Positions 46,594-51,460 of a stretch of DNA of 64,000 bases are shown one piece after another. Every line of letters begins with the position of its first letter. The first letter of the stretch is position 1. The notes beneath the pieces are model-generated. The model was not told where the DNA came from. It searched no databases and worked only from the letters and a program-made list of their open reading frames with translations. The stretch covers positions 790,251-854,250 of the forward strand of contig RQSC01000027.1 in NCBI GenBank assembly GCA_013416795.1, in the 5' to 3' direction. Source of the DNA: Prasinococcaceae sp. CCMP 1430. Its lineage: Eukaryota; Plantae; Prasinodermophyta. Made by a program: the position numbers and the translations under genes.

Positions 46594-46868
46594 CTCCCAC
46601 CCAACGACCTCGCCCCTTGCAACGGGTTGCTCTCCTCGCAGGGACGCGCGTCTCGCTCGCGCAGCGACCGAGAGGCCTCGCGCTTCCTCGTGGATGCTCG
46701 CGGCGGCGGTGGCGCGCGCGGCGGCGGCGGCGGCGAGGGCGCGCGGGCGCGCGCGCAGGCGCGCGGCAGCAGCGGCAGCTGCAGCGGCCGCGGAGGCCGT
46801 TGACGGCGTTGGCAGCCAAGGGGGTGGCGGCGGCGGGCCCTAGCAGGAAGCCGTGCGCGGGTCTCGGC

Positions 46869-47810
46869 ATGGACGCCTCGCAGAAGTACCTATTCGACAC
46901 GCTCGGCTACGTCGTCGTGCGTGGCGCGCTGAGCGCCGACGAGGTTGCCGCGGCCAATGCAGCGATCGACCGGCGGCGGGAGAGCGAGCTGCACGAGCGC
47001 GCGCGCACGCCGTCGCTCAGGCTCTCCGGCGGGTCTAAGAGCTTGGAAGGCGACGGCAAGACGGGCCGCGTGGACTGTGGCACTGTGCTCAGCTGGCCTT
47101 CGCCTGACGGCGACGTCTTCCGCCGCCTGCTGGCTCACCCCTCGCTCGTGCCATATGTCAACGACCTGTGCTGCCCGGGCTATCGCCTCGACCACTCGCC
47201 GCTGCTAATCGTGCAGCAGAAGGGAGCGGAAGGCTTCGAGCTGCACGGTGGCAACCTCGGGGCCACGGGCGAGTGGAACTACCAGACTGCGTACGTGTAC
47301 CAGGGCGAGCGCTGCCACAACTTCCTGCTCAATATGAGCATCGCGCTCACCGACAACGACGGCTCCAGCGGTGGCTTCGCGGTGTTGCCCGGCAGCCATA
47401 AGAGCAACCTGGCTCCGCCCGGCGGACTACGCGCCTGCGAGCCCGAGTACATGAGCATGCTGCAGCGCCCGGCGCTCAAGGCGGGTGACGCCATCCTCTT
47501 CTCTGAGGGTACGCTGCACGGCACGCTGCCGTGGACGGGCGAGGACGAGCGCCGTGCCGTCTTCTTCCGCTTCACAATGCCCACGCATGCGTACGCCCGG
47601 GGATACACCGAGGGCTGGCCAGAAGACGTGCTGGACAAGGTCACTGACGAGCAACGCGTGGTGCTCGAACCGCCATACGCAGTGCGCCTGAACCGCAACA
47701 CGCTGCGCGCGCCGACGGATGGCGGGGACGTGGAGCGCGTCGTTGCGCAGCCGCGCGATCCCAAGAAGGTCGAGTTCGACGAGACTGTCTTCAAACGCGC
47801 CTACTTTTAG
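46869..47810 (+). CDS. Fe(II)/2-oxoglutarate oxygenase, phytanoyl-CoA dioxygenase (PhyH) family, with an H-G-G motif
   Basis: YLFDTLGYVVV..AL, ELHGG, SIALTD...GGFAVLPGSHK, KAGDAILF....HGT.PW, RR.VF. Confidence 0.88.
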   Translation: MDASQKYLFDTLGYVVVRGALSADEVAAANAAIDRRRESELHERARTPSLRLSGGSKSLEGDGKTGRVDCGTVLSWPSPDGDVFRRLLAHPSLVPYVNDLCCPGYRLDHSPLLIVQQKGAEGFELHGGNLGATGEWNYQTAYVYQGERCHNFLLNMSIALTDNDGSSGGFAVLPGSHKSNLAPPGGLRACEPEYMSMLQRPALKAGDAILFSEGTLHGTLPWTGEDERRAVFFRFTMPTHAYARGYTEGWPEDVLDKVTDEQRVVLEPPYAVRLNRNTLRAPTDGGDVERVVAQPRDPKKVEFDETVFKRAYF

Positions 47811-47852: not shown

Positions 47853-50051
47853 TCAGGTGGTTTTGTCCCGCCTTTTCACCCTTGCCTTGAGCTTGTTGTC
47901 GGTGGCGTCGAGGCGCGCCTGCTCGTCGAGTGGCAGCTCACTGAAGCACAGCTCGCACAGGCACTTGGACATGAGCCCACACTCACCGAAAGCACCGTGC
48001 GGCGAGTACCGCGTGTGTTTGATACAAAAGACGCCCTGGCAATCCCTGCAGTAGTGTCGCGTCATGCTACTCAGTCTGCGCGGCCGCAGGGACATGAGGA
48101 AGGGGCATGGGCGTCAGCACAGCACCGTGCGTTAGGCGATGCGCGTGCGCGTGCGCATCAAGGTATGCGGGTCTATCATTCGCGCGACGTACGAGAACCT
48201 CTTGAACTCCTTGTCGCAGCTGGGTGCGTGGCAGTGCGAGCGCACAGCGCTCGGTGCAGACGGCGCTCTGCCGACTCCTCTGCTGCTGCCCCCAGAAGCC
48301 GCAAGCGACACACGCCTCCGCTGCCGGCTTGCGTCGAGCGCCTTCGCGGCTGCGCGACGCCAGCGGCCGCCGGCGCTACCGTCAGTGCTGTTGTTGGCGC
48401 CCGCAGGAAAGGAGGGTGCGCGCGCGGTGCCATTAGCGATGCCGTTTGGCGTCGGTGCAGTCGCCTCCTCTGCTGCTGCTCCTGCGCGCGTACTCACTGG
48501 CCCTGCGGGCGGTCGCGTGAGTGTGGCGGTGCGTGCTCCAGCCAGCTCGCCCACCTCACCGGAGCTCTCACCATCGCCTCGCTCGCCATCACGAACGGAG
48601 TCACCCTCATCGCCTTCGCTGCTGCCGCCCATTCCGCCTGCTCTTGCGCTACCATTAGCGCGCCGCGCCACCCAGCGCAGCCCTACTGCGGCAGCGATGG
48701 CCACCAAGTTCAGGGCCAACGAGCGCAGCAGGGACGCGACCCACGCAAGGATGCCGCCGCCTCTGTGCCGAGGCATTTCTTGGACCCCCCCCTCGGAACC
48801 AACGCACGCCCCCGCGCCGTCGCAGCACTGGACTACAGCCCATTTGCCACCGCTGTGGAAGTTCCACGCCCGCACGCGGAATTCGCAAGCGGGCGCGCCG
48901 CTACCAGCCGCGTGGAAACGCGCGAGCGCATCGGGGTACGGGCCTGCGCCACCATTCCGGTCCTCAGCTGGCGGCACGTAGTGAATCACCTCGGAGACCG
49001 GCGTGGCTTCCGCGACGGCGGCGTGCACCCACTCGGAACCGCCCCATCGACCGCCGCTTGCACTCTGCACCTCGTAGCCATGCGTGGGCGGGTCGCCAAG
49101 CTCTTCGGGAGGTGCCCATCGCACGCTAGCCACACTGCCAGCGGCCACGCTACTACCCAGCACCTGCGCGCCATGCGTATGGCACGAGCACGACGGCGTG
49201 CCCACCACGCCAGGCCCCGTGCCTATGTCGAGCAATTTCCACTTCAGCGCGCGCAGGATCTTCTGCCTGTGAAGCGTTGAAGTCACACCGAGCTCCTCGG
49301 AGAGGATGTCCGGCGCGTTTACGATGGTAGCAAACTCGAGCGCTGTGACAGCGGCGGCAATGAAGGCTGGTGCGTACTGGGGCAGCTGCAGACCGTGCGC
49401 CACCCAGTCGGCCACGCCTTCGACCGTGAGTAGCGCGCGCAACGAGCCGCCTGCGCGCACGTGCGAGTCGAGCTCATCCACGGACACGGTCTCGTCTGCG
49501 TCGGCCGACGAGTCCAGCGCAACGAGCAGTGCGCTCGCGCCGCGCTCGATTTCGCCTGCTTCGTCAAACTGAGTGCCACCCACCTCCCCTCGCAGATAGT
49601 TCTTGGCCTCATCGTGCTCGATCTGGCCGTCCCCGTCTTCGTCGAGCGCCACGAAGAATTCGGCGATATCCGAGCGCGAGCCGCGCGGGACGGCCTGGGG
49701 CGGCGCCAAGTCCCCATCCCCCGGCGCTGCGTCGCGGGCGCCCGCGCCGAGCACAACCTCGGAGGCCGCAGCCAAGGCTGCCGCGGTCGCCAAGGCCGCA
49801 GCCGCCGCCGCGCGCGCACACGCCGCCGCTGGCCGCCTCCGGTCGTGCGCATCGCGCACGCCCGGCGGCGCCTCTGGCGCCGGCGCGCGCGTGCACGCGC
49901 CAGGTGCCACCGTCCGCCAGAGTATCTGCACAGGTGTCAGGTGTGTCACACACGCACGCGGACCGCGGACGCCACCAAAAAAAAAAACAGCTTTGACGAG
50001 CGTTCGCTTTCCGCTGTTCCCCGAACGCCCGCTTTTCGGTGCCTTTTCCAT
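47853..50051 (-). CDS. STIM-like type I membrane protein: signal peptide, EF-hand, hidden EF-hand, SAM, FN3, TM, FYVE-like finger; last exon 48075-47853
   Basis: EF loop DEDGDGQIEHDE; TVSVDEL; SAM LTVEGVADWVAHGLQLPQY...HRQKILRAL; FN3 VRWAPP..GDPPTHGYEV...EFRVRAWN; TM ILAWVASLLRSLALNLVAIAAAVGL followed by RWVARR. Intron 48076-48192 joins CHAPSC.KEF to RHYCRDCQGVFC..H...CLCELC. The 5' end is uncertain. Confidence 0.82.
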
Positions 50052-50428: not shown

Positions 50429-51460
50429 ATGGGCTTCTTCAAGAAGAAGCGTGCGCCCATCACTAACGCGGCGGGCGTCGCTGCGGCCGCTGAGAAGCAG
50501 GCGGTCGACGTGAGGCTCACAAAGAAGAAATACAAGCTCGAAGATGAAGGGTGGAAGTGCGTGTGCGCGCGTCATGGCTCAGCGCTGGCGTCCGCTGTCC
50601 GCGGCCACTTCGCCGCGTCCACACGTCCGCACGTGCGCAGGCACCCGCACACGCGCGGTTGCACTTTGCCCTGACCCACGTGCGTCGTGCACCAACGCGC
50701 TCGCACGCGCGTGTGTGTTGGGTCCTATCTCACACTCTGATGTGGTCAGGTCGGAGGGCGGTACAAGCGCAGACGAGGAAGGGGCAAGCGGCTCAGGTGC
50801 AGGGCTACGCGAAGCGCAGCGCGAGCTGGCGTCCGCACGCGCCTGCATCGGTGAGCTCGAGAGCGCCGTCACAGCGCTGCAGGTGCGTCGTTGCTGCTCC
50901 GTCGTGTGACGCATGCAGAGCGCGCCGCTTGGACCTTGCTGCCACGGCAGCATTGCGCCGACGCCTGCACTGCTGTGTTTTGGTCCCTTCACAACGCTGT
51001 CGCACGTCAGGGTAGCCGCGTGCGCTGACATGGGCCGTGACACCGCCGTCCTCATGCCGCGAGCGAGCGCAGGCAGCGCTTGGCGAGGCGCGCGCGCGCG
51101 CGACCGCCGAGGGCGAAAAGTACAACCTCATCGAGTTCAAGTACCAGCTCCTGGTTGACATGTGGACAATGAGGGTGCTCGACAACGGTGCGGATCCGGG
51201 CTCGCTTGGCGAATGCTCGACTTGACGCAGTCGGGATTGCAACAGCTGACCCAACCCATTCACGCCTCCCGAAACGAACCCAAACACACTCACACACACT
51301 CGTTCCCTTCATCCCTCTGCCCCCAATCTCCACGCAACACACGCACACCGGCGGCGCCGCGCGCGCGTGATCTGCGTCCATAGATGCTGCGACCGCGCAA
51401 GAGGAGGCGGCAGCGCTGCAGGCCGAGCAGCAGGCCCCTGCACCCGTCGAGGCGGCGTAG
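50429..51460 (+). CDS. Chibby (CBY1)-like small coiled-coil protein; 4 exons (50429-50556, 50750-50882, 51073-51187, 51384-51460)
   Basis: MGFFKKK..., VRLTKKKYKLEDEGWK and YNLIEFKYQLLVDM parallel Chibby's MPFF, MNLAGQSLKFENGQW and NNLLRLKVDILLDM. All junctions are GT-AG and keep the frame. Confidence 0.65.

Follow-up and report, generated by a model that had tools for sequence, protein, structure and literature searches.

A 64,000-nucleotide stretch of the genome of the prasinodermophyte alga Prasinococcaceae sp. CCMP 1430 (assembly GCA_013416795.1, contig RQSC01000027.1, positions 790,251 to 854,250 of the forward strand), hereafter referred to as the window, carries a gene between positions 50051 and 47853 whose features, given below in window coordinates, all lie on the minus strand. 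We read its product as a membrane protein with a non-cytosolic STIM-type EF-SAM module and a fibronectin type III (FN3) domain, followed by one transmembrane segment and by a cytosolic linker, a basic helix and a zinc finger of the FYVE superfamily. This reading, in which the protein would serve as a switch that clusters upon loss of Ca2+, is held with moderate confidence.

On the evidence of sequence profiles and of a predicted fold, the lumenal EF-SAM (49694-49221) is a STIM-type module, as a preliminary description of this DNA had proposed. When a profile built from 58 EF-SAM sequences of the family was compared with the Protein Data Bank (PDB), STIM2 (5.2e-11) and C. elegans STIM (5.5e-10) led the matches, with human STIM1 at 3.1e-9. 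Each STIM match formed one collinear stretch across both EF hands and the SAM domain without large gaps, and calmodulin-type matches spanned the EF half only. The likeness is not merely that of a generic EF-hand pair joined to a generic SAM domain, since a profile of the SAM domain alone also ranked STIM2, STIM1 and C. elegans STIM ahead of all solved SAM domains (2.2e-7, 5.5e-7 and 4.2e-6, respectively; the first non-STIM match was Shank2 at 3.7e-5). The AlphaFold2 model of 49694-49221 reached a predicted local distance difference test score (pLDDT) of 92.8 and a predicted template-modeling score of 0.86. In the comparison with the STIM1 EF-SAM by Foldseek that had been suggested earlier, a template-modeling score (TM-score) above 0.45 was obtained for three STIM EF-SAM structures only, which occupied the top three places (0.73, 0.67 and 0.64, with root-mean-square deviations of 2.7-3.5 over about 150 columns). 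VIA-align, which is independent of Foldseek, placed STIM EF-SAMs at Z 15.9 over 145 residues and Z 12.5 over 142 residues, while all non-STIM chains remained at Z 11.4 or below and each covered one half of the model.

Within the module, the canonical 12-residue EF1 loop DEDGDGQIEHDE was found exactly where it had first been noticed (49643-49608) and follows the canonical rule throughout (D1, D/N3, D/N/S5, G6, hydrophobic 8, E12), with conservation at loop positions 1, 3, 5, 6, 8 and 12. The loop is canonical in 49 of the 58 aligned members, D1 being present in 55 and E12 in 56 of them, and Ca2+ binding by EF1 is, to judge from these sequences, kept under selection. The single EF-hand models of Pfam fell slightly under their cut-off for the window protein (22.5 versus 25 bits). 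The degenerate second EF hand described earlier corresponds to the 14-residue "hidden" loop DSSADADETVSVDE (49514-49473), in which the first-position D is conserved in at least 90%; it aligns with the hidden EF region of STIM and is non-canonical as in STIM. The SAM domain (49433-49221; Pfam SAM_2, 2.2e-8), likewise seen before, passed the gathering scores of both SAM_2 (34.6 bits, cut-off 20.5) and SAM_1 (30.2 bits, cut-off 23). One subgroup of homologues (P0003, P0004, P0007, P0010 and P0011) has a degenerate EF1 loop (EGADD...) and a canonical second loop (DKGNDGLISLKE); in these proteins the Ca2+-binding site has apparently shifted from one hand of the EF pair to its partner.

The family was delimited by an exhaustive HMMER search, for which the lumenal regions of four sequences supplied the profile; the number of cluster representatives fell from 1332 at E<=1e-3 to 472 at 1e-10 and 141 at 1e-30. 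By a strict pattern the finger was present in 66 of the 153 top proteins, most of which have a transmembrane segment between FN3 and finger, and the same domain order recurs in dozens of cluster representatives, which exceeds chance. A gene-fusion artefact was ruled out by this conservation of the architecture across the family. A word-indexed homologue search, in which low-complexity words dominated, yielded three relatives only and was used for names. Named members belong to chlorophytes (Micractinium, Chlorella vulgaris, Scenedesmus, Gonium, Edaphochlamys, Bryopsis, Symbiochloris, Apatococcus, Picocystis and Pyramimonas), streptophyte algae (Chlorokybus and Chara), land plants (Selaginella, Diphasiastrum, Sphagnum, Ceratodon and Ginkgo) and stramenopiles (the diatoms Ditylum and Proboscia as well as Chrysophaeum), and are annotated only as hypothetical, "SAM domain-containing" or "EF-hand" proteins. 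The survey across algae that had been advised found family members in chlorophytes, streptophytes and stramenopiles, and the accompanying remark that STIM is generally regarded as missing from land plants does not extend to this family, which is present in the five land-plant genera listed here. With the Selaginella protein as query, mosses, lycophytes and Ginkgo were retrieved and no angiosperm member, a word-limited result that is not proof of absence.

In a maximum-likelihood tree of the lumenal region, a clade of embryophytes and Chara (100/99), a core-chlorophyte clade (98/93) and a stramenopile-containing clade (100/99; three named members, most rows unnamed) were recovered, and the window protein and P0001, a homologue from a marine eukaryote transcriptome catalogue, formed a pair on their own deep branch (100/99). 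Vertical inheritance of the family is favored by this recovery of clades. Two very long homologues, P0102 (2145 amino acids) and P0021 (2163 amino acids), continue beyond the finger with PPR repeats or a FAST-kinase-like domain and are probably annotation fusions with a neighboring gene. The family is so far undescribed: the literature searched, which did not include Collins & Meyer 2011, held no paper in which algae or plants were linked with EF-SAM or STIM-like proteins. The earlier claim of an undescribed system therefore agrees with that literature, in which reviews up to 2025 call STIM absent from these lineages. The family was probably overlooked because single-sequence searches and Pfam STIM searches fall under threshold.

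Between the SAM domain and the membrane lies an FN3-like domain with an internal low-complexity insert (about 49220-48822). Positions 144-252 of the lumenal family profile match FN3 domains of titin (per-domain E of about 2e-5), contactin and receptor phosphatases (PTPR), and Pfam fn3 exceeded its cut-off in the homologues P0102, P0112 and P0009. The FN3 domain of the preliminary description was thus borne out at the level of the family, whereas a Pfam scan of the window protein alone did not detect it. A hydropathy scan located the transmembrane segment (48752-48669), which the basic flank RRANG follows, in agreement with the single membrane span and positive-inside flank already recognized, and its site between FN3 and finger is conserved across the family. 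The land-plant members P0051, P0260, P0261 and P0263 share a conserved hydrophobic/amphipathic juxtamembrane segment of about 35 residues just after the transmembrane segment, which is absent in the window protein and in chlorophytes. The cytosolic linker (48668-48234) comprises about 145 low-complexity residues rich in G, S, A, P and R, as expected of the disordered linker noted before; among homologues it is not alignable and varies in length from 64 to 294 residues. No coiled-coil, SOAR/CAD, CC1 or other STIM cytosolic model of Pfam matched the window protein at E<=1, which fits the earlier remark that a CC1/SOAR coil is lacking.

A conserved basic helix motif, RWRRAAAKALDASRQRRR (48365-48312), is common to the window protein and P0001 and precedes the finger in both. 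In core chlorophytes and Chara, the related motif RW(R/K)(R/K)AG...RF(K/R) is instead placed behind the finger, at the very C-terminus (P0002, P0184, P0025, P0032, P0022 and P0142). The window protein itself ends in the short basic stretch KLKARVKRRDKTT, with the RWRR...RQRRR helix located upstream. For the basic helix, the roles conceivable include membrane binding as an amphipathic helix, calmodulin binding and retention by an RXR-type signal.

The C-terminal zinc finger begins at the end of exon A (C-x4-C ... EFKR; 48233-48199), where C13 and C18 are invariant in the 66 aligned fingers, and is completed in exon B. Across these 66 fingers eleven Cys/His positions are invariant and one further position is either His or Cys, in the layout C-x4-C ... 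H-x-C-x2-C-x4-C-x2-(H/C)-x5-H-x5-C-x5-C-x-C-x2-C; eight of the positions correspond to FYVE cross-brace ligands, and the four further conserved Cys/His suggest a third zinc site. All top 12 PDB matches of the finger family profile were FYVE domains (ALFY, 2.5e-7; Vps27, 1.7e-6; EEA1, 2.7e-6; Hrs, 1.7e-5), and Pfam FYVE was matched at E<=0.01 by 33 of the 66 fingers (best 3.8e-8), although the window-type finger alone stayed under the Pfam cut-off (16.6 versus 27.8 bits). Because an intron splits the window finger, P0001 was used as a stand-in for the fold model, which was moderately confident (pLDDT 76) and whose matches, weak in score (Foldseek E of at least 0.16, Z 3-4.3), were FYVE domains and FYVE-related Rab-effector fingers. 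As far as profile matches can tell, the finger is a cross-brace zinc finger of the FYVE superfamily, and the "FYVE-like" label it had been given is appropriate. An AN1 zinc finger was also considered, given the AN1-like spacing C-x2-C-x4-C-x2-H-x5-H and a Pfam zf-AN1 match (E of about 0.008), and was ruled out: 2 of the 66 fingers match AN1 versus 33 for FYVE, and the family profile matches FYVE only.

Two subtypes of the finger were distinguished. The diatom-like subtype retains (R)x(R)HHC and has DD before the first Cys in 53-59% of its members, whereas the green-lineage subtype, to which the window copy belongs, has (K/R)HYC, the second His being replaced by Tyr in 81% of its members, and is devoid of WxxD and RVC. 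Canonical recognition of phosphatidylinositol 3-phosphate (PI3P) is accordingly predicted to be unlikely for the subtype of the window finger and more plausible for the diatom subtype.

The open reading frame (ORF) listing and the sequence resolve the gene into two exons, exon A extending down to 48199 and exon B from 48075 to 47853. The minus-strand frame of exon A is open from beyond 50051 to a stop at 48134-48132, and exon B lies within a second ORF (48095-47853). The intervening intron (48198-48076; 123 nt, GT..AG, phase 2) contains that in-frame TAA and splits the finger. Its donor GT (48198-48197) follows AAGAG, and its acceptor AG (48077-48076) immediately precedes exon B, so that the predicted splice links ...CDKEFKR to LSSMTRHYCRDC... 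The junction EFKR|LSS is backed by homologues that are contiguous at this point (EFKRLSLSS in P0001, RFDRLRD in P0002 of Micractinium), and the spliced finger of the preliminary description is confirmed to that extent; an alternative acceptor 9 nt downstream is possible at the cost of a conserved Leu. Exon B encodes the remainder of the finger (RHYCRDC...CIKH...H...C...C.C..C), a C-terminal helix and the short basic tail, and ends with the stop codon 47855-47853. Convergent to this gene lies a PhyH-type gene of the phytanoyl-CoA dioxygenase family (46854-47810, plus strand; Pfam 2.7e-15), whose stop is 43 nt from that of the window gene; the two 3' untranslated regions must therefore overlap, and a separate finger gene would have no room between the stops.

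The 5' region (50051-49694) is less well defined. It starts with the ATG at 50051, runs through a low-GC stretch that is not coding-like and includes an Ala-rich hydrophobic segment (about 49830-49750) that could be the h-region of a signal peptide or a signal anchor. The features listed earlier were all found at their stated places, on the minus strand, but the start at 50051 (MEKAP) is doubtful, because GC content between 50120 and 49985 is just 50-62% with no codon-position bias and no in-frame ATG was found between 50051 and the Ala-rich stretch. The start codon was fixed neither by the codon-position GC signal nor by assuming that a short intron follows the ATG at 49852, which is out of frame. 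An in-frame GTG at about 49859 would yield a textbook signal peptide, yet it is not a normal eukaryotic start.

Among homologues, the EF-SAM is preceded either by a cleavable signal peptide (P0002 and P0025) or by an N-terminal extension and a first transmembrane segment (P0086 and P0096). Either N-terminus is predicted to put EF-SAM-FN3 on the non-cytosolic side, which would be an organelle lumen or the cell exterior, and the finger in the cytosol; conserved Cys residues lie on the lumenal side, and the zinc finger lies on the opposite side of the transmembrane segment. By analogy to STIM, with which the predicted fold is shared and from which the dynamics are borrowed, Ca2+ bound to the canonical EF1 would allow the EF pair to clamp the SAM domain and keep the protein dispersed. 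A drop in lumenal Ca2+ would then loosen the EF-SAM and lead to self-association, through which the cytosolic fingers and basic motifs would be clustered. Once clustered, they would bind more avidly to a partner, perhaps an acidic lipid, perhaps a protein, on a membrane lying opposite. Since FYVE domains on their own have a weak hold on membranes and depend on dimerization, a clustering switch would be an effective means of controlling the finger. Given that CC1 and SOAR are lacking, the output would be unlike that of STIM.

The protein shares with STIM1, STIM2 and C. elegans STIM a canonical EF, a hidden EF and a SAM domain in one unit and would also resemble them in a putative N-terminal signal, a single transmembrane segment and an otherwise cytosolic remainder, and the predicted fold is alike in figures as well (TM-score 0.64-0.73, Z 12.5-15.9 over about 145 residues). 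It differs from STIM in the FN3 domain of about 130 residues that the window family has between SAM and membrane, in having no CC1 or SOAR/CAD and apparently no long polybasic tail, and in a cytosolic output made up of a disordered linker and a FYVE-type finger. Moreover, the window family occurs in Viridiplantae and ochrophytes and STIM in Holozoa, and the Pfam STIM EF-hand model remains under its cut-off. With canonical FYVE domains (EEA1, Vps27/Hrs, ALFY and endofin) the finger shares the cross-brace ligand spacing (C..C, (R/K)H(H/Y)C..C-x4-C-x2-(H/C), C-x2-C) followed by a C-terminal helix, family profile matches of 2.5e-7 to 7e-5 and its best fold matches. In contrast to them, it is without WxxD and RVC, reads TRHYCR, uses His as its sixth ligand and has four extra invariant Cys/His. 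Rab-effector fingers (rabphilin-3A, melanophilin/Slac2-a, Slp4 and RIM2), FYVE-like domains that no longer have the PI3P motifs and use proteins as their ligands, were also among the top or near-top fold matches (Z 4.3 and 4.2, structural scores that are weak, as is typical for small zinc fingers). Unlike them, the finger of the window family has no evident flanking Rab-binding helices and gave no sequence-level match.

Several observations weigh against the interpretation as a lumenal, STIM-type clustering switch. The packing of EF hands and SAM in the model is not fully independent evidence, because AlphaFold was trained on STIM structures, and the window protein fell short of the cut-off of the Pfam model EF-hand_STIM1 (PF25578; 20.7 versus 32.2 bits), which attained E<=0.01 in just 3 of the 58 members. 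An FN3 domain is typically part of an extracellular protein; the EF-SAM could thus face the cell exterior instead, where it would be saturated with Ca2+ in seawater, and the ER (endoplasmic reticulum)-retrieval motif KKXX is absent from the window protein sequence. To these may be added the doubtful start codon and the state of the three signature motifs of FYVE domains in the window finger: WxxD is missing (...SAVRSH precedes the first Cys), R(R/K)HHCR is altered to TRHYCR, and RVC is missing as well (KCLCELC, with an invariant Cys at the Arg position). These departures make canonical PI3P binding of the window finger doubtful, and the PI3P binding proposed earlier is not supported; the target membranes named with it (endosome, vacuole and autophagosome) are purely conjectural. 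In view of the four extra invariant Cys/His, the invariant His of TRHYCR may even be a ligand of a third zinc.

Other explanations of the same architecture were weighed against this clustering switch. Orai has been reported in green algae, in plants "as far as gymnosperms" and in diatoms, with loss in angiosperms; STIM has been reported missing from those Orai-bearing lineages, another sensor is said to be expected there, and reviews up to 2025 ask what senses the stores in them and whether store-operated entry exists (PMC11085791, PMC8318260, PMC11894410). The protein might be the functional counterpart of STIM for the Orai channels of the green lineage and diatoms, a sensor of Ca2+ stores that works with Orai in non-animal lineages: depletion would cluster it at contacts between ER and plasma membrane through binding of plasma-membrane lipids by the finger and the basic motifs, where it would gate or trap Orai via a non-SOAR interface. 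The STIM-type EF-SAM fits such a role, and so does the distribution of the family (chlorophytes, streptophyte algae, mosses, lycophytes, Ginkgo and diatoms, with no angiosperm in the Selaginella-seeded search), which mirrors the published range of Orai in lineages where the missing sensor is expected (PMC11085791, PMC8318260, PMC11894410). This match is suggestive, not decisive: it comes from a comparison of taxon lists, and the angiosperm absence comes from a word-limited search. In addition, retention up to Ginkgo with loss in angiosperms is a pattern common to many genes, such as those for motile sperm, and the protein has no SOAR/CAD or CC1 and a linker that is not conserved. On balance we regard a partnership with Orai as improbable. 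The same Orai-like distribution in the green lineage nevertheless makes the previous suggestion that the protein acts instead of gating Orai questionable; we found no evidence for that clause, and the distribution runs against it.

The proposal of a cell-surface or endosomal receptor, in which EF-SAM-FN3 would be a Ca2+-stabilized structural or adhesive ectodomain and the finger would serve endosomal sorting or signaling with no store sensing, is rated as similarly unlikely. It would account for the FN3 domain, a typical ectodomain module, and for the lack of an ER-retrieval signal in the sequence; FYVE domains act classically on endosomes, and animal STIM1 is also found partly at the cell surface. 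However, the EF1 loop is strongly conserved, and at the surface, in seawater, a canonical EF hand would hold its Ca2+ at all times and therefore be uninformative as a sensor. The predicted EF-SAM match is also specific to STIM, including the clamp geometry, which suggests use as a switch and not as a mere scaffold. A further possibility is convergence, in which a generic EF-hand pair and a generic SAM domain would have been fused independently and the STIM mechanism could not be transferred. In single-sequence searches against solved structures the SAM domains of SAMD5, EphB1 and Caskin outrank STIM, Pfam EF-hand_STIM1 remains under threshold and FN3 stands between SAM and membrane, unlike in STIM; yet with the family profile the SAM domain alone is closest to STIM SAMs, the spacing from EF to SAM is collinear with STIM without large gaps, and the whole unit scores Z 15.9 as opposed to half-matches of at most 11.4, so we consider convergence very unlikely. 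Hardly credible at all is an artefact of the gene model, with a finger exon that belongs to a separate gene or an ORF that is non-functional. The start codon of the model is doubtful and the stop codon in the intron means that a retained intron would truncate the finger, but the architecture is contiguous in the transcriptome homologue P0001 and in many genomes, the residues at the junction are conserved and the stop of the convergent gene, 43 nt away, leaves no space for another gene.

Elsewhere in the surrounding sequence, a homopolymer of about 45 nt (50296-50252; G on the minus strand) with an NN assembly gap at 50269-50268 occupies the divergent intergenic region, beyond which a plus-strand ORF starts near 50429 (MGFFKKKRAP...). 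On the minus strand, an ORF at 45900-44860 lies inside a longer GC-rich ORF and matches Sulfotransfer_3 below threshold (24.7 versus 27 bits).

What is new here is that lineages thought to have no such sensor carry a putative one of STIM type, in which the addition to the ectodomain and the cytosolic output are both different. The STIM-type EF-SAM is conserved where reviews call STIM absent, including mosses, lycophytes and Ginkgo, which places the origin of this module long before that of animals, and the family would combine in a new design a lumenal Ca2+ switch with a lipid- or protein-binding zinc finger. It also provides a concrete candidate gene for study in Chlamydomonas, Physcomitrium or Phaeodactylum. 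If the protein were indeed the partner of Orai, a reading that we regard as improbable, green algae, diatoms and land plants other than flowering ones would possess store-operated Ca2+ entry or a comparable switch at contact sites, and an ancestral EF-SAM sensor, with a FYVE-type finger and a basic helix in place of SOAR, would predate Holozoa.

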